Source: Camelus dromedarius (Eukaryota). Taken from it: a stretch of DNA of 64,000 nucleotides. The notes beneath the pieces were generated by a model. That model was not told the origin of the DNA, made no database searches, and saw only the letters and a list, made by a program, of their open reading frames with translations. Positions 1,474 to 32,154 of this stretch are shown piece after piece. Each line of letters starts with the position of its first letter. Position 1 is the first letter of the stretch. Position numbers and translations under genes: made by a program. Location: contig NC_087447.1 of NCBI RefSeq assembly GCF_036321535.1, positions 13,144,001 through 13,208,000 on the forward strand, read 5' to 3'.

Positions 1474-2421
1474 TTACATTGCATGAGAAAACAGTTTGGT
1501 GTTAATTAACCTTCTGGCTGCCTCCTTCACATCATTATTTCTAAGGCTGTAGATAAGGGGGTTCAGCATGGGGATGACAATTGTGTAAAACACAGTGGCT
1601 ACTTTGATGAGGAGCCATGAGCTTATGGAGGTGGGCAGACAGTAGAGAAGAAGGATGGTCCCGTGGAAAATGGTGATGGCAGTCAGGTGGGAGGCACAGG
1701 TGGAGAAGGCTTTTCGGCATCCACCAGTGGAAGGCATCTTGACAACTGTGACAACTATGAAAACATAGGAGGAGGGGATAATCAGGAGACTACATGCCTC
1801 ATTGAATGTAGAAATGATGAAACACATCATCTGACTGAAGTAGGGGTCAGAACAGGCTAGAGAGAGGATGGCAGAATATCCACAACCAAAGTGATTTATG
1901 GTGTTGGAACCACAGAAGAACAGTCCCAGAAGAGAATATGTGATTGTTAAGGAACACATCCCACCCCACGTGTAGGATGCAGCTACCAGGAGGGCACAGA
2001 GCTTACGAGACATAGCCACTGTGTAGAGCAGGGGGTTACAAATAGCCACAAGTCGGTCATAGGCCATCACCGCTAACATGAACATTTCTGTAATCACAAG
2101 TGAGCAACCAAAGAAAAATTGCATCATGCAACCCATATAAGAGATAGTCTTTGTGTCCACAACCAAGATCTCTAAGAGTTTGGGTGTAAGTGCCAAAGAG
2201 TAACAGAAATCAAGAAAGGAGAGATTGCTGAGAAAAAAGTACATGGGTGTGTGGAGTGTGGGACTGACTCTGATGATCACTATCATGCCCAGGTTCCCCA
2301 GCACAGTGACTGTATAGATGGCCGAGAAGACCAAGAAGAGGGGCGCCTGCAGGGGTGGGTGTTCCGAGAAGCCCAAGTGGACGAAGGTGATGCCAGCGCT
2401 CTGATTCCCCTCATCCGTCAT
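1474..2421 (-). CDS. Olfactory receptor, family 5 subfamily D-like (class II), 315 aa
   Basis: Intact ORF with N-terminal NQS sequon, [39 protein letters not shown] and [12 protein letters not shown]. The TIFHGTIL and FNE motifs are typical of OR5D. Splice acceptor TTTTCTCCGGCAG|GAACCATA lies just before the ATG (intron ends at 2430). Confidence 0.95.
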
Positions 2422-3078: not shown

Positions 3079-3234
3079 NNNNNNNNNNNNNNNNNNNNNN
3101 NNNNNNNNNNNNNNNNNNNNNNNNNNNNNNNNNNNNNNNNNNNNNNNNNNNNNNNNNNNNNNNNNNNNNNNNNNNNNNNNNNNNNNNNNNNNNNNNNNNN
3201 NNNNNNNNNNNNNNNNNNNNNNNNNNNNNNNNNN
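3079..3234. other. Assembly gap/masked run, 156 N
   Basis: Seen directly. Confidence 1.
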
Positions 3235-4150: not shown

Positions 4151-4437
4151 ATTTACCTAAAATATGTTTCAAATTGAGAAAAAATAACATTACTTGAAGG
4201 TCTACCAACTTGACTAGAACATTATTAAACTACATAAGCAAGAATCAAAGACAAATGCACACCAAATATCTTAAAGATGTAAGAAATAGAGTTAGTAAAC
4301 TCTATTATTCTCAGTGGAATTAGATGGATCCCACTGAACTGCAACTACGATTGCATAGATGTTTCTCTGGCAAACATACTTCTGATTTCAGTTTCCCACA
4401 GCAGAACTAAAATACGTCATTTAGTTTAAGAACTCAC

Positions 4438-10539: not shown

Positions 10540-11499
10540 TTATTTGAATTCTATTGAGTGAGAGAGCAGTTTGATATTTCTGAAGCTCCTGACTGTGTCT
10601 TTCACATCTTTGTTCCTAAGACTATAGATAAGTGGGTTCAGCATGGGGATCAAGACAGTAAAAAACACAGTGGCCACTCTGACCAGGAGCCATGAGCTTG
10701 TGGAGTTGGGCACACAGTAGAGAAGAAGGATGGTCCCGTGGAAAATGGTGATGGCAGTCAGGTGGGAGGCACAGGTGGAGAAGGCTTTTCGGCATCCACC
10801 AGTGGAAGGCATCTTGATGATTGTGACAACTATGAAAACATAGGAGGAGAGGATAATCAGGAGACTACTTGCCTCATTGAATGTAGAAATGATGAAACAC
10901 ATCATCTGACTGAAGTAGGGGTCAGAACAGGCTAGAGAGAGGATGGCAGAATACTCACAACCAAAGTGATTTATGGTGTTGGAACCACAGAAGGACAGTC
11001 CCAGAAGAGAATATGTGATTGTCAAGGAACATATCCCACCCCACGTGTAGGATGCAGCTACCAGGAGGGCACAGAGCTTATGAGACATAGTGACTGTGTA
11101 GAGCAGGGGCTTACAAACAGCCACAAGTCGGTCATAGGCCATCACCGCTAACATGAACATTTCTGTAATCACAAATGCACAAACAAAGAAAAACTGTGCC
11201 ATGCATGCTTTGAAAGAGATAGCTCTGTCGTCCACAACCAAGATCTCTAGGAGTTTGGGTGTGAATACACTGGAATAACAAATGTCCAAAATGGACAAAT
11301 GGCTGAGGAAAAAGTACATGGGTGTGTGGAGGTTGGGATTGATCCTTATGACCACAATTATGCCCAGGTTCCCCAGCAGAGTGACCGTGTAGATGGTCAA
11401 GAGTGCTAGGAAGAGGGGCACCTGGAGGGGTGGGTATTCTGAGAAGCCCAAGAGGATGAAGGTGGTCACAGAGCTCTGATTTCCCTCATTCAGCACCAT
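10540..11499 (-). CDS. Olfactory receptor, family 5 subfamily D-like, 319 aa
   Basis: Intact ORF with NQS sequon, [42 protein letters not shown] and [16 protein letters not shown]. Kozak-like GCCATGG. Confidence 0.95.

Positions 11500-11513: not shown

Positions 11514-11576
<63 letters not shown>
11514..11576. repeat. (TAAG)15 tetranucleotide microsatellite, followed by degenerate (ATGA/ATAA)n
   Basis: Seen directly; begins 15 bp upstream of the OR ATG. Confidence 0.97.
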
Positions 11577-11577
<1 letters not shown>

Positions 11578-13033
11578 TGAATAGATGAATAAATGAATAA
11601 ATGAATGAAAAGGATTGATATTGAGCAGCAGAACATGAGAAGGTAGAGTAAGAGGAACTCAGGACAGCTCAACCTAAACTAATGAAGGCAACATGGTCAT
11701 CGTGTACCCACAAGGGTTCTGAAAGCTTCCATTTAAAGTCTTACATGACAACTTAACTGAATTTGATTATGGGCAATTCACTTTATCCCTCCAGAACTTT
11801 AGTTTCCTCATCTGGAAAAGAAGAAGAAAATAGTAATTATGAATAGCATTATTTTATATAAATGATTTCTAAATGTAGGTGATACTTAGAGCATTGAATA
11901 GCCCCATGATAAAACAAAGGAGACACAGTGAAATCAAGAAAAAAAAAAATTGAGCTCCATGATCATGGCAGAAGTGACCTTAGGAAGAGTCAACACTTTT
12001 AATACATAAGGAAGAACATGTTTAGTAAATTTCTTTGGAGAAAGAAGTATTCTCCATTCACAAGTCTGTATTGGTAGATTGAATGTTTAGCTGTTCTAAG
12101 TATATCCCATTATTAAGGACTCATAGAACATCTACTTAACAGGATCTACAAGTGGTCTCCTCAAAAACTCCACTAGTAACTAAGTTCTCTCTCCCACCAA
12201 ATGGTCATTTATAAGGCTCAAAATTAGGAAGCATATTCCTAAATTAAATTAATTTAATTAATGCTCATTCAGCCTTGGTCCCTTATTACATATGTAGCTT
12301 TAGCAAACTGTTAATTTTATGAACCTCAATTTTATCATCTATGAAATGCTAACAACAGGACTATCCTTGGTCATTTAATGCTTAGTGCAGAAGTCTCAAA
12401 TCAGGTGTGCCTTTAAATTATTTGAGAACATGTCCTACACTTAGTTAAAGCTCCCTTCCACCTGAATTTTCTAATGTTGTTTTTTCCAAGAAAATGCCAT
12501 CAGTTCCAAGTGTTTAAAATGTCTTTCCATGCACATTTGCCATGTGATTTTAAGAAGGGTTTTATATCCTGGATTCCTTTTAAATTTAGATTTTCCCTCA
12601 ATCTGAGAGTCACGGTTGTCTGCATTTCTAATTTACCTACATGTAGTCTTCATTTTCCCCTGGTTTTCCAAACTCCATCTTGTTCTGTCTGACTTTTTTT
12701 GTCATTTCATATCTTTGACTGTGGGAAAGGCAATCAGAGAAAAATTCAAAAGGAGAAATTTTCAACGTGTATCTCCTTCTTTATTTACATTGTTATTAGC
12801 TATCTAATCATCCAGACATAAGGTTTCCAACTATCCTATCAACCACAGTCCAACCTATAAGATTAACTTTAATGACTTTCTTAACCTGGTATGTAAAAGT
12901 ATAAGTACTTTTGAAGGCATTTTAGGCTAAATGAATCAAATTAAAATGTTTCAGCTTAGATTTCTGTAATACTTCTAGGAACTACCTAACCACATCCTGT
13001 TGTCAATACAAAACTACTTACCTCATAGAAGTA

Positions 13034-17937: not shown

Positions 17938-18915
17938 TTACACTTTTTCACAGAACAATTTAATATTGATTAATTTCTTCACTGACTCCTTCACATCTTT
18001 GTTCCTGAGGCTGTAGATCAGAGGGTTCAGCATGGGGATGACCACGGTGTAAAAGACAGAGGCCACCTTGACCATGAGCCATGAACTTTTGGAGTTAGGG
18101 ACACAGTAGAGAAAAAGGATGGTCCCATGGAAGATGGTGACAGCGGTCAGGTGGGAGGCACAGGTGGAGAAGGCTTTGTGGCGCCCCCCAGTAGAAGGCA
18201 TCTTCATGACAGTGATAAAAATGAAAACATAGGAAGTGAGAATGATCATCAGGCTGCTTACTTCATTGAATGTGGCAGAGACTAAAAGGACCTCCTGGCT
18301 AATGTAGGGGTCAGAGCAGGAAACAGCAACAATGGCAGAGTATTCACACACAAAGTTATTTATGATGTTAGACCCACAAAAGGATAAGGTCAACAAAAAG
18401 TATGTGTACGTTAGGGAACAAGCCACACTCCAAGAGTATGACACAGCCACCAACAAGGAACAGCGCTTCTGAGACATCACAGCTGCGTAGAGAAGAGGGC
18501 TACAAACGGCCACAAATCTGTCATAGGCCATCGCTGCCAACATGTAAGTCTCTGTCACAACAAACATGCAGGCAAAGAAGAACTGCAGGATGCATCCTGT
18601 GAAGGAGACAGTTCTGTCTTCTACAACCAAGTTTTCCAGCAGTTTGGGTATAACCACTGTAGAGTAACAGAAGTCAGCAAAGGACAAGTGGCTGAGGAAG
18701 AAGTACATGGGGGTGTGGAGACTGGGACTGAGCTTGATGGTCAGGACCACGCCCAGGTTGCCCAGCACCGTGACCGTGTAGACGGTCAGGAACACCAGGA
18801 GGAGGGGCAGCTGGAGTTCCGGGTACTCTGAGAAGCCCGAGAGAATGAAAGTGACCTCAGCACTCTGATTCTCTTGGTTCCTGTGGACAAAATATGAAAG
18901 TTGGTTCAGTGACAT
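17938..18915 (-). CDS. Olfactory receptor, family 5 subfamily D-like; true 5' end uncertain (325 aa from the first ATG; possible two-exon CDS)
   Basis: All 7-TM OR motifs intact ([53 protein letters not shown]). The ORF-track start at 18924 is TTG; the first ATG is at 18915, upstream of an apparent splice acceptor at 18881. Confidence 0.9.
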
Positions 18916-21900
18916 GAGGAGCAAAATTTGGACATGGATGGCTAAAATGAGGAAATGTCGAGAGACTTGGTGAATATCTGTAAGTAGTGTTGTGGAAAAT
19001 ACTTGATTTCAATTCTTAAACTTATTTTAAAAGCTAGAATTTACTAATGTCACCATTATAGGGTGAGTATAAAATTTGTGCAAATGGAAAAAGAAGTTGA
19101 GAAAAGTGGAACAATGGAGTTGACCTGTTATATTTCAAATGATCAGATCCAGTCCCCTCAGAGGCAGCTGGTTTCATGAGACAGATCAGTGTATGAGACA
19201 TGAATGAATATGAGACAGCTAAAGTCCTGCTCTTGAAAGAAATGTGTATCATACATTTTTACAATTTCTTCCTTGCCTAACTTATTTAACTGTGAGAAAT
19301 TAGAACTCAAAAGAGAATTATTGACCCAGCACAATGGTCAAGTTACTTTATTTTGCTTTTTTTTAACTACGGTTGGTGTAGCTATTACTGAATTTACCTT
19401 TCCAGTTAACTACTTAACACTCAGTCACATTTCTCTCCTCATATTTTAGAAATTTCCTGCAGAAGAATAATGTACTTCATCAGCTACATTTATCTAATTA
19501 TCAAAATTGTAAAATCTGTTACTGTTACGTCTTGTTCTATCAAGTAGTTAAAGAGACTCATGGTAGAAATAAACTTAATTATATTCTCTTCACACTATTT
19601 TTCTTATGCCAGAGAACTTTCTACAACATCATTATTAAATGGTCAACTTACTCTAACTCAAAACTCCCAAAGATGGGGCACTGCTTTCTGATGTATGATT
19701 AGACCGTGGTTTTCTACTGAGTTAAAGATTTTCTTGCTCTGAGTAGGTTTCCACAGACATAAAGATAACTCTTTCAGTGCCCTATACTGTTATCTTCATG
19801 ATCTTATCCAATAATTTTCTCTCTACTTGACCGATGGCCATGGTCCTACTCCGTCAACTATTGTCAGCCCTCAAAAATGACAACTTCAGCCACATCTGTA
19901 ACCTAGTAGACAATGTACTTATTTTCTGTCATTTACCATTTTATCATTGTCTGTTCCACAGAAAAATCAAATTCATGCAAACAAAGATGGAAGAAAGTAG
20001 GCACTCAATAATATGCATTGAATAAATAAATATATGAGTATGTGAGTGAGTAAAGTCTAGGTATATAATAAGCATATTGGGGTAAAAACTCTCATAATAC
20101 TCTAATTGTAATAATATTATAATAATATTAAAGAAGTTAGACTTGCCTACTAAGGCAGCAGCATGCTGTGAACTCACAGTGCACTGAGACACACCTGGAG
20201 TCCTAGGAAACAGCAGCCACTGTGCAAACTTCCTGGGCCCTGAGCTTCCTGAATTAGCATAAAATAAAGATACGTATGGAGATAAAAGGACGCACTGAAT
20301 TCTTTTTTTTAAAAAGGCCTGTGTTCCTCCAAAACGCTTCAACTGTCTTTTTTTTTTTCTTTTTACAGTAATTTTTTGCTATAATTCATTCTTCTCAAAG
20401 CCACTTCCAAATCTTTCTGAAACCTAAAATGGCACTTTGCATAAAGGGATGTTCATTCCACACAGAATTCTGTAAAAATCCTGTCTTATCAGGAGCTGAA
20501 ATCAAACACTGTTTTGTTTTCCAGTTATTACACCTTTACCCTCTCTATGCACACTTGAGGTTTTCCTGTACATACAGAAGGACATCATTCACATAGCCCT
20601 GCTTTTTCTTCTTCAATTGTTCCTTTACTGTCCTTTGATTTGACACTTGTGATTTAATCCCTCATCACATTTATGATTTCCTGAAAGTATATTTCAGTTT
20701 AACGTAAAACTCTTTTTAAAAAGACTGAGTTTTAAGTTAAATACTCAAACACAGAATGCAGATTCTGTAACTGAAGAGACTTTTTTCCCAAATCTGTGTT
20801 CATCCCCTGTGGTGCTTGTAAACAAAGTCTGAGTAGCCAGGACTGAGAAGGAAATCACCGCCATCAAAGATAAAGACATTTCGCCATGCATATTCAGTTC
20901 CTCCTCATGCACACATCTTCCCCACACCTGCGGCTCTGCGTTTCACCTCCTGCACTCTGTGTTTATCGGTGGCCAACGTTCACAATCTTGCATTTAGCCC
21001 CAGGAAGTGTCGATCGTGTTCAGCTGAGAACACGAATGTCCTGTCCACTGTTTCTCTCCCTTCCGGTGTTATCTCTCCTGGAACGATTTTCACATCGTAG
21101 ACCCACTATGCACTCAGTACTATAACAGGCTTTTCAGAAACTATACAATTATAAAACACGAGCCTCATTCTCAGTTTTTTTCCTTACGAGAAACATTCCA
21201 GGGAATAATGCATATAAGCACAAAAGACACATTGAAACACACATTTCTTATTTGTTATTTAAGTTTGTGTGGATAAAGTAAAGGATAAGAACATTGCAAT
21301 TGAGAAAAACTGAAACATTTCTCAGTGATGTAGGCTGGTGAATCGTAAGAGATAAATGTGGTGAAAGATAAGGAACTGAATACTTCTAGTGAGCTGCACT
21401 AAATAGGTCACCTGGCCATTAGTTTTACACATGTGCTATTTTCCTTTTAAAATGAAATAGGGATTGAAGCAACTCACCGGAGTGCAGAATTTGACTTATT
21501 CATTTAATGGAGTTTGTTTGCTAATATTAATGGATTCCAGAAAAATTCCTGCTGAGAATTCTACTATTTTTAGTATAGTAATAAACCTGAAAAAAAATAG
21601 GAACAGAAATCTACAGTATACTGCAATGAATATTTCAGGAATAATGACTTTTTCCTCTAATCTATTAAAAAATAAACTCAGAGATGACAAAGAGAAAAGG
21701 AGACAAAAAGCTGACCCCTAACACCAGACTGCTACGTTTATATGCCATCAAAACCTTAGGGAGCTTAACCCTGGAGAATATTGTTGACTCTCGCCTTGGG
21801 GATGAGAAATAGAGCAATTAGATGAAGCAATTCCCTGTGTGATGTTTTGGTCATATTTGATTTCTTCTGAAGATTGGGGAATAATTTCATCATAAACTCT

Positions 21901-23563: not shown

Positions 23564-24806
23564 GGGAGATAGAAGATCTTACAAACCATCAAGGGCCTGA
23601 AGGTGTCTGAAATACAGAAGAAAAACAAAAGGGGACTCCAACCAGTGTATTCAAATATTTTCAAGGCTAAATTGTTTGAGAAACCCTGGTCTCTTTCCTG
23701 TGTCTTCAAGGCAGAAAATTAATTAATTTAAAAAACCCCACAAGAACATGATTTCAGAACAACAACGACAGAAGAGCTTCCTCCCCATAGCACCCAAACA
23801 GAATAACATGGATGACCCCGCGCCTCTGGGCTGCTCAGTACCACTAAAAGGGTATAACAAGGGGCGCTAGAGATGTCAACTTTAACGTAAATAAAAGGCA
23901 GGGGCGGCCTTTCAGGAAGAACGCAGCCAGAAGTAAAACTCCACAACAGCTCTCTGCATGTCCCATCTTCCGTGACTAATCCTTATACTGGTCTAGAGAT
24001 CTCACTAAGATCACCTCACCTTTGGTATTCTCAAAGTGCTCTGTTGTTTTTAAATTATCTGTGATTCTCAAAACCCAGAAGTTGTACATATCTAACAGGT
24101 TGTTTTAACCGTCCACCCAAAAAAATAACTGTTTCAGTAATTAAACAGTTACTCTAATCGTCCTAACAAGGAAGGATTTGGTTCAAAGCAAGCTTTTTAA
24201 ATCCTTGCCTGAAAACGAGAAGATCATTTCTGCAAGCTTACATGAGTATAACACAATCTAAAAATAAGGAATGCAATTCAAAATAGCCTCCCAAGTCCAG
24301 GATTACCTATAAAGGCGCAGTTACAGAGAGATGGAGGCCTACGGATACGCAAACCTCTGAGAACGGAAGGTACACAGTGCAGCCCGTGAGGACTGCTCTG
24401 TTCTCCAGGGTAACTCGACGAGATTACAGGCGATTTTCTTGATCTTTTTGATCTGCTCTAGGTCTCCAGCCTGACACATATTTCAGAAAACATGGACGAG
24501 CCCAGGTAACTGTGATAACGGAGCTCTTCAATCCCAGTTCACCGTTAGTTCTCACCACGTAAGAGGCGGCGCGTTTGTTTTTAAGTTTATCCTACTTTGA
24601 CGTAAGGAGAAAGCAGTGTTGGTTTTACTTTTCCCCAACACTCCCATTTTGATTCTCCATTTGTGGTCTCATTCTCAACCAAAATACATGGTAATTGGTA
24701 GAACATTTTTCAAAGGGTCTAATAATAATAATAATAAAAATTTCCCTGAAAATTAGTAGCAATGCGTATGAACTTCTTTCTCTTAGAAGCGATACAAACG
24801 GAGCAT

Positions 24807-31221: not shown

Positions 31222-32154
31222 ATGGAAAACAGGAATAACGTTACGGAATTTATTCTCTTAGGACTTTCTGAGAAAAAAGAAATTGAAGCTCTCTGCTTTT
31301 TGCTATTCCTACTTTGTTACATTGCAATTTTGATGGGAAACCTGCTTGTCATGATGTCTATCACCTGCAGTCAACTTATCAAGCAGCCTATGTATTTCTT
31401 CCTGAGTTACCTCTCGCTCTCTGACCTCTGCTACACCTCCACGGTGACCCCCAAGTTGATCATTGACTTGCTGGCAGTAAAGAAGATTATTTCCTACAAT
31501 GGCTGCATGGCACAGCTCTTCACCATGCACTTCTTTGGGGGGATCGAGGTCTTCATCCTCACAGGGATGGCCTACGACCGCTACGTGGCCATCTGCAAGC
31601 CGCTGCACTACACGGTCATCATGAGCAGGCAGAGGTGCGGTGCCATGATGGCTGCTTCCTGTGCTGGGGGCTTCCTGCACTCCTTTGGTCAGTTTGTCCT
31701 GGCCATCTTTCTGCCCTACTGTGGCCCCAATGAAATAGATCATTACTTCTGCGATGTGTATCCTTTGCTGAAACTGGCCTGCACGGACACAAGCAGAATC
31801 GGTCTCCTGGTCATTGCCAATTCGGGCCTGATGGGCCTGGTGACGTTCGTGGTGCTGTTGATATCCTACGCTGTGATCTTATATACCATCAGGTCCTACC
31901 CCGCGGATGAGGGCCGCAAAGCTCTCTCCACCTGCAGTTCCCACATCACTGTGGTGGTCCTTTTTTTCGCTCCTTTACTCTTTGTTTATATCCGACCAGC
32001 AACTACTTTACCGGAAGACAAAGTGTTCGCTCTGTTCTACACCATCATTGCCCCCATGCTCAACCCTCTGATCTACACACTAAGAAACACGGAGATGAAG
32101 AATGCCATGAAGAAGCTATGGTGCCGTATCATGGGAAGGAAGGAAGTAAACTGA
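31222..32154 (+). CDS. Olfactory receptor, family 4 subfamily P-like (OR4P4-like), 310 aa, intact
   Basis: NVT sequon, [75 protein letters not shown]. Acceptor TTGTCTAATTTCAG ends at 31198. Confidence 0.95.

Follow-up and report, generated by a model that had tools for sequence, protein, structure and literature searches.

A dromedary OR5D-type olfactory receptor gene very likely starts in a short, conserved upstream coding exon

Introduction

Where does translation begin in an olfactory receptor (OR) gene whose main exon carries no ATG behind its splice acceptor? The question is raised by the third of three OR5D-type genes (gene 3) in a stretch of 64 000 nucleotides (nt) from Camelus dromedarius (NC_087447.1, positions 13 144 001 to 13 208 000; this whole stretch is 'the window', and its numbering is used throughout). 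In most OR genes the upstream exon is non-coding. The same holds for any upstream exons of gene 1 of the window, because an ATG stands 8 nt beyond its acceptor CAG|GAACC (GAACCATAATG); the splice region of gene 1 reads ttttctccggcag|GAACCATAATGACGGATGAGGGGAATCAG. Gene 3 keeps an acceptor of this type (ctttcatattttgtccacag|GAACCAAGAGAATCAG, i.e. CACAG|GAACC, with the intron ending at 18881 and the exon starting at 18880) without an ATG 3' of it.

The first-pass annotation of the window, made from the sequence alone, had pointed out this difference between the two genes and had located the only nearby in-frame ATG (18915) on the intron side of the gene 3 acceptor. It proposed that an ATG at 21503, followed by the donor CCG|GTGAGT (last exon base 21478), supplies the start in exactly phase 2 (MNKSNSALR|) and adds an NKS sequon; it also listed a second phase-2 candidate (ATG 21213 with the donor CTC|GTAAGG at 21188) and warned that in-frame matches of this sort may be due to chance. 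All of these coordinates and sequences were confirmed in the present analysis, and so was the warning. On the strength of sequence comparison, gene 3 is very likely the dromedary member of the OR5D3/Olfr1174-1175-1177 clade of split class II ORs, with the coding sequence (CDS) 21503..21478 + 18880..17938. A literature search did not reveal any description of gene 3 in camels.

A two-exon reading frame for gene 3

The spliced CDS is 969 nt long, contains a single, terminal stop and encodes 322 amino acids (aa), with the junction MNKSNSALR|NQENQS. Its open reading frame (ORF) is intact, exceeds 300 aa and extends over two exons, as is expected of a split OR. The product has two N-terminal sequons, NKS (encoded by exon 1, 21478..21503) and NQS, together with the OR motifs PMYFF (residue 66), MAYDR (126), KAFSTC (244) and PMLNPLIY (291), and it aligns over its full length with receptors of other orders (76-85% identity). 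The translation of exon 2 is 100% identical to the NCBI record 'olfactory receptor 5D13 [Camelus dromedarius]' (P0001), for which the precomputed Pfam assignments are PF13853 (7tm_4) and PF00001 (7tm_1). The open stretch of gene 3 is bounded by an in-frame stop 156 nt 5' of the VTFIL motif, and 18915 is the sole in-frame ATG that it contains upstream of the acceptor.

How often a suitable upstream start could arise by chance was evaluated in the 12 kb upstream. This region contains 255 ATG...GT combinations in the right phase, 40 of them with a donor agreeing with the consensus in at least 4 of 7 positions; the donor at 21478 is the only in-phase donor that reaches 6 of 7. With 255 combinations available, an in-phase match is uninformative by itself, and the case for exon 1 therefore rests on conservation.

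Conservation of exon 1 and of both splice sites

The comparison covered eight aligned loci from five orders: dromedary, alpaca (L005), two tandem genes of the musk deer Moschus (L006 and L007), the lemur Eulemur (L002), the bat Glossophaga (L003), the beaver Castor (L004) and Trichechus (L008). The camel sequence from 24493 to 18130 is colinear, intron included, with the loci of musk deer (L007), Eulemur and Glossophaga, the identity of the intron being 65-72%. Within it, the segment 21420-21700 (minus strand) can be aligned with coding exon 1 as annotated in Eulemur, Glossophaga ('OR5D3') and Castor, and also with unannotated counterparts in alpaca and musk deer (L007). Judged by these alignments, exon 1 of gene 3 is orthologous to the coding exon 1 of the lemur, bat, beaver, musk deer and alpaca loci.

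Two checks had been suggested for the two-exon structure, namely a search of other species for a conserved ATG plus donor, and an examination of whether orthologues conserve the acceptor or rather the peptide that would be read through it. Both came out in its favour. The ATG of exon 1 and an in-frame TAA directly 5' of it are invariant in 8/8 loci (alpaca and non-camelid mammals among them), and so many also retain the donor GT(G/A)AGTT and the acceptor YAG|GAA; ATG 18915, from which the competing peptide would be read, is missing in six of the eight, and its frame is broken by 1-nt indels in two of the species (see below). The coding part of exon 1 measures 29 nt in the other loci and 26 nt in both camelids, owing to a common 3-nt deletion which is the sole indel in this part; reading phase is preserved, and the camelid AGG>CGG change preserves the split Arg codon.

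A conservation profile was computed in 40-nt windows from a 5-species alignment of 22000-18800. The top value (0.863) is centred at 21486 and the second (0.844) lies at the start of exon 2; the value for exon 1 plus donor is reached by none of 2457 intron windows. Mean identity is 0.889 over the donor stretch (21469..21477) and 0.81 over the polypyrimidine tract and acceptor (18881..18905), against a background of 0.58.

Exon 2 itself is under purifying selection, with a ratio of non-synonymous to synonymous substitution rates (dN/dS) of 0.205 between dromedary and alpaca; because of this value we do not regard gene 3 as a relic. The main exon is devoid of any in-frame ATG in alpaca, Castor, Trichechus and the musk deer gene P0059, and none of the eight loci has a conserved downstream Met that would give a full-length single-exon ORF, the absence of such a Met being another feature expected of split ORs. 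Since the alpaca main exon lacks an in-frame ATG and its ORF is nevertheless constrained, camelids need a start in an upstream exon.

N-terminal peptides and phylogeny of related receptors

An N-terminus of the form M[NST][KH]S..S..R followed by NQENQ is present in at least 26 of the 120 closest proteins, and split-type N-termini occur in primates, rodents, lagomorphs, bats, artiodactyls, Afrotheria and Tupaia. The corresponding peptides are MNKSNSSAFR in Eulemur, MSKSNFSALR in Pteronotus, MSKSNSSTLR in Glossophaga ('OR5D3'), MNKANSSVLR in Castor and MNHPSASVFR in Trichechus. The remaining members of the clade have been given ad hoc N-termini, for instance by reading through the polypyrimidine tract or by adding arbitrary short exons. 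In the clade tree, from which gene 1 was dropped and in which gene 2 was included, all split-type models fall into one clade (106 rows, support 97); gene 2, unlike gene 3, lies outside, as do the classic MxxxEGNQS receptors.

Exon 1 peptides are of two kinds, MNKSNSS.. and MNHS.ASVF... When Peromyscus P0099 served as the query of a protein search, the matches included Acomys (319 aa, MNTSEFSASW|) and Cricetulus (320 aa, MHYSEAHVFR|), and no Mus or Homo record was among those listed by name; these muroid proteins suggest that the two kinds correspond to the 319-aa and 320-aa mouse genes. The idea that exon 1 falls into two separate paralogous types (K-type and H-type) which track the exon 2 tree was rejected, as the types are intermixed on it. 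This intermixing may be due to gene conversion between tandem copies.

Other possible starts

If the sequence 5' of 18880 were retained in the transcript, because transcription starts within the intron or because the acceptor at 18942 is used, gene 3 would be a single-exon gene beginning at ATG 18915 and coding for 325 aa, either as its sole form or as a second isoform. The frame is open from 18915, a C. ferus record uses this very ATG (P0003, MSLNQ, 325 aa), and OR genes with both split and single-exon isoforms have been described (Barnes et al. 2020, PMC7055050). The musk deer gene P0044 also has an ATG at the equivalent position. However, outside Camelus this is the only locus that has it: alpaca, Eulemur (AAT), Glossophaga (ATT), Castor, Trichechus and musk deer P0059 do not; in alpaca a 2-nt gap at this point shifts the frame as well, and in Eulemur and Castor the 1-nt indels that break it lie in the tract. 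The stretch that would have to be coding (18942-18906) is conserved at 0.608, hardly above the background of 0.577, the residues 'YFVHR' are the polypyrimidine tract and its AG in translation, the acceptor at 18942 is not conserved beyond the camelids, and an out-of-frame ATG at 18935 opens a 9-codon upstream ORF (MSKFCSSCH*) that overlaps ATG 18915. A single-exon gene is accordingly regarded as quite unlikely. Slightly less improbable, though still unlikely, is that Camelus, unlike alpaca, has gained a second usable start at 18915, so that the ancestral split form (MNKSNSALR...) would coexist with a lineage-specific single-exon form; the latter would arise through intron retention or an internal start site, and one locus would then yield receptors with differing extracellular N-termini.

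The public camelid records offer three N-termini for gene 3, MFL (316 aa), MSLNQ (325 aa) and MKPAAS (331 aa), and none of the three corresponds to the conserved exon. In the NCBI model for dromedary, Bactrian camel and alpaca, a coding first exon of 8 nt (ATG 23749, ATGTTCTT|GT) is joined to 18880, giving MFL-NQENQS... Three camelid records carry this N-terminus (P0001, P0002 and P0005) and the ATG exists in dromedary and alpaca, but its donors are weak (GTGGGG in dromedary, GTGTTT in alpaca), the ATG position is AGC in the orthologous musk deer locus, and, at the threshold applied, BLAST aligned nothing from lemur, bat or beaver to this stretch. Moreover, the alpaca gene range begins exactly at the MFL ATG; the model is therefore without an untranslated region (UTR) and without a sign of transcript support, and we consider it extremely unlikely. 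Starts in other upstream exons are plentiful in principle, given the number of in-phase combinations: ATG 19177 with a donor at 19125 (C. ferus MKPAASEGTGSDHLKYNR|NQ; used in the NCBI C. ferus record P0004, MKPAAS, 331 aa) and the ATG 21213 mentioned above (MHYSLECFS|NQ) are both in phase. The donor GT is conserved at neither 19125 nor 21188; the aligned species show CTTAAAGG or CTCAGAAGG in place of the former and CAGGGCC or AAGAGCC in place of the latter. That gene 3 has no usable start and is a recently dead pseudogene would be hard to reconcile with an ORF that is intact in four camelid records and with the dN/dS value against alpaca. A start in one of these other exons, or a startless gene, is very unlikely. 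The starts at 21213, 19177 (MKPAAS) and 23749 (MFL) were accordingly rejected as not conserved. The expectation of the first-pass annotation that a single-ORF model of this gene would have the wrong N-terminus is thus supported by sequence comparison, and the public camelid models of gene 3 most likely have a wrong start.

The musk deer orthologue P0044 provides a parallel. Its annotation (L007:6001-6972, Moschus berezovskii) shows a single exon that begins at the counterpart of ATG 18915, and an intact exon 1 (MSQSNSTTLK, donor CAA|GTGAGT) lies ~1.8 kb upstream of it (L007:~4190-4225). Its annotated start is probably wrong in the same way.

Observations that weigh against the two-exon structure

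Several observations weigh against the split structure preferred here. At exon position -2 the camelid exon 1 donor carries C in place of A, ATG 21503 stands in a poor Kozak context (T at -3), and the dromedary has the in-frame ATG 18915, which leaves room for a single-exon isoform. The exon 1 models of other species begin exactly at the ATG and may be homology projections rather than transcript-supported; therefore they were not counted as independent evidence, which the conservation of the DNA is. Whereas the OR5D3P and Olfr models are based on olfactory RNA-seq, that of camel gene 3 is based on conservation only. Its place in the OR5D3/Olfr1177 orthology group follows from position and clade membership, and the link to human runs through the tables of Barnes et al. 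and synteny, which leave OR5D3P and OR5D2P undivided. Finally, sequencing runs labelled as RNA contain 52-58% of the exon 2 words and 35-69% of the words of the mostly intronic segment 21300-21620. As the intron flank is represented about as well as exon 2, these runs were discarded as expression evidence and are silent on splicing.

The runs concerned (X1-X4, X6 and X28) are catalogued as transcriptomic RNA-Seq of a 'reproductive system metagenome' and contain about half of both exon and intron words. In appearance the contigs of these runs are host genomic DNA and not spliced RNA.

The region upstream of ATG 21503 and a model for expression

The positions of all features are collected in Table 1. 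Two further conservation peaks of the 5-species profile, centred at 21758 and 21831, lie upstream of exon 1, where a homeodomain-type site, an O/E-like site and a TATA-like element follow one another. Homeodomain and O/E sites near the start site are the usual composition of OR promoters. By analogy with this known make-up, the block may be regarded as promoter-like; we offer this as a lead. No ATG was found in camel between the TATA-like element and ATG 21503, and in three of the other four species the sole ATGs of this interval lie within ~20 nt of the TATA-like element; because of this, an mRNA that starts near 21710 would have ATG 21503 as its first AUG. At 21597-21586 there is also a conserved TTTTTTCAG|G, lost in Castor, which could instead be the acceptor of an internal exon.

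Table 1. Features of the gene 3 locus and neighbouring OR5D-type genes, in window coordinates
Feature	Position	Strand	Remarks
OR5D-type gene 1	1474-2421	-	
OR5D-type gene 2	10540-11499	-	
OR5D-type gene 3	17938-18924	-	open frame; stop codon 17938-17940
Exon 2	17938..18880	-	last base of Arg-9, NQENQS..., to stop; all seven transmembrane segments and OR motifs
Polypyrimidine tract and acceptor	18881..18905	-	...ctttcatattttgtccacag|
Rival start ATG	18913..18915	-	single-exon 325-aa model; within branch-point/polypyrimidine region of the intron
Intron	18881..21477	-	2597 bp, phase 2, splits codon 9
5' splice donor	21469..21477	-	GTGAGTTGC; exon side CCG (CCG|GTGAGT), last exon base 21478
Exon 1, coding part	21478..21503	-	ATG AAT AAG TCA AAT TCT GCA CTC CG = MNKSNSAL + two bases of Arg-9
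Probable 5' UTR of exon 1	21504..21720	-	upstream limit inferred; conservation 0.72-0.75
Promoter-like block	21737..21821	-	from 5-species alignment and motif positions; ~230-320 nt 5' of ATG 21503
TATA-like element	21744-21737	-	CATATAAA
O/E-like site	21779-21767	-	ATTCTCCAGGGTT
Homeodomain-type site	21821-21815	-	CTAATTG, invariant in 5 species
MFL exon of NCBI models	23742-23749	-	alpaca L005:8001-8008

The following course of events would account for these features. In this clade the main exon would have lost the ATG found immediately 3' of CAG|GAACC in paralogues such as gene 1, and translation would begin instead at an AUG in the upstream exon. Transcription of gene 3 probably begins around 21710, 3' of the conserved block with its homeodomain, O/E and TATA-like elements; 21503 would provide the first AUG and exon 1 would end at 21478 (CCG|GTGAGT). 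Removal of the 2597-bp phase-2 intron would then join exon 1 to exon 2, beginning at 18880, and yield the 322-aa receptor. We infer that camel olfactory neurons express the gene and use the two splice sites and this transcription start.

Neighbouring genes

In the window, the three OR5D-type genes on the minus strand are followed by three OR4-type genes. The one nearest to gene 3 (31222-32154, plus strand) is OR4P4-like ('olfactory receptor 1178-like') and divergent to it. Exon 1 was used to search the camel genome and the window for paralogues, and the sole match was exon 1 itself; the search did not show a homologous non-coding exon 5' of gene 1 or gene 2. Around 11520-11590 (minus strand), no acceptor like those of genes 1 and 3 is visible for gene 2. 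The same interval holds a (TTAC)n microsatellite of ~17 units which abuts the gene 2 start codon on its upstream side. Two runs of N 5' of gene 1 (2864-2998 and 3079-3234) restrict any search for an upstream exon of that gene.

Implications for annotation

The main value of these results is a correction of annotation, the principle of split ORs being already known. What is new is the addition of a camelid member to a described class and the finding that the placental orders sampled share the split structure seen in the OR5D3 clade. Pipelines that are limited to single-exon ORFs, or that fill in whichever ATG is close by, will give the whole clade wrong starts or misclassify it, and models with a wrong start affect both counts of OR repertoires and expression constructs designed from the predicted protein.

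Comparison with known split olfactory receptors

Human OR5D3P and mouse Olfr1174-ps, Olfr1175-ps and Olfr1177-ps were curated as split ORs from RNA-seq by Barnes et al. (2020, BMC Genomics 21:196, PMC7055050), who demanded conservation of both the initiator Met and the splice junction. In each of the four the intron is located at aa 9; ORF and intron lengths are 320 aa and 3114 bp for Olfr1174-ps, 320 aa and 3470 bp for Olfr1175-ps, 319 aa and 1540 bp for Olfr1177-ps, and 323 aa and 2161 bp for OR5D3P (ENST00000641440; PMC7055050, Suppl. File 3). The three mouse loci are used there to illustrate how an ATG in an upstream exon rescues 'pseudogenes' (PMC7055050, Fig. 5a), and human olfactory mucosa expresses OR5D3P at counts of 19-269 (PMC7055050, Suppl. 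File 6). As to position, Olfr1177-ps (minus strand) adjoins Olfr1178 (plus strand), a gene of OR4P type, and the human gene order is OR4P1P, OR5D2P, OR5D3P, OR5D17P, OR5D13 (PMC7055050, Suppl. File 1). The suggestion put forward with the initial proposal, that OR5D members beside the OR4P genes are among the split ORs, is borne out by these four genes.

Camel gene 3 belongs to the same subfamily (OR5D) and occupies the same place beside OR4P/Olfr1178 genes, and it is arranged divergently to its OR4P4-like neighbour, as is Olfr1177-ps to Olfr1178. Gene 3 also shares with OR5D3P, Olfr1174, Olfr1175 and Olfr1177 a main exon without an ATG 3' of the acceptor, an initiator ATG in a short upstream exon and an intron in codon 9-10. 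Unlike in those genes, the camelid exon 1 is one codon shorter (26 versus 29 coding nt) and the split Arg codon is CGG instead of AGG. Its peptide is of the 'MNKSNSS' kind found in lemur (P0069), bat (P0038, 'OR5D3') and beaver (P0100), not of the 'MNHSNASVFR' kind of an Old World monkey (P0024). The ordinary OR5D genes with a single coding exon (genes 1 and 2 of the window; OR5D13, OR5D14, OR5D16 and OR5D18) have the class II OR fold and motifs in common with gene 3. With regard to dimensions, the camel intron of 2597 bp lies within the range of 1540-3470 bp, and the ORF of 322 aa within the range of 319-323 aa, spanned by the four split genes of human and mouse.

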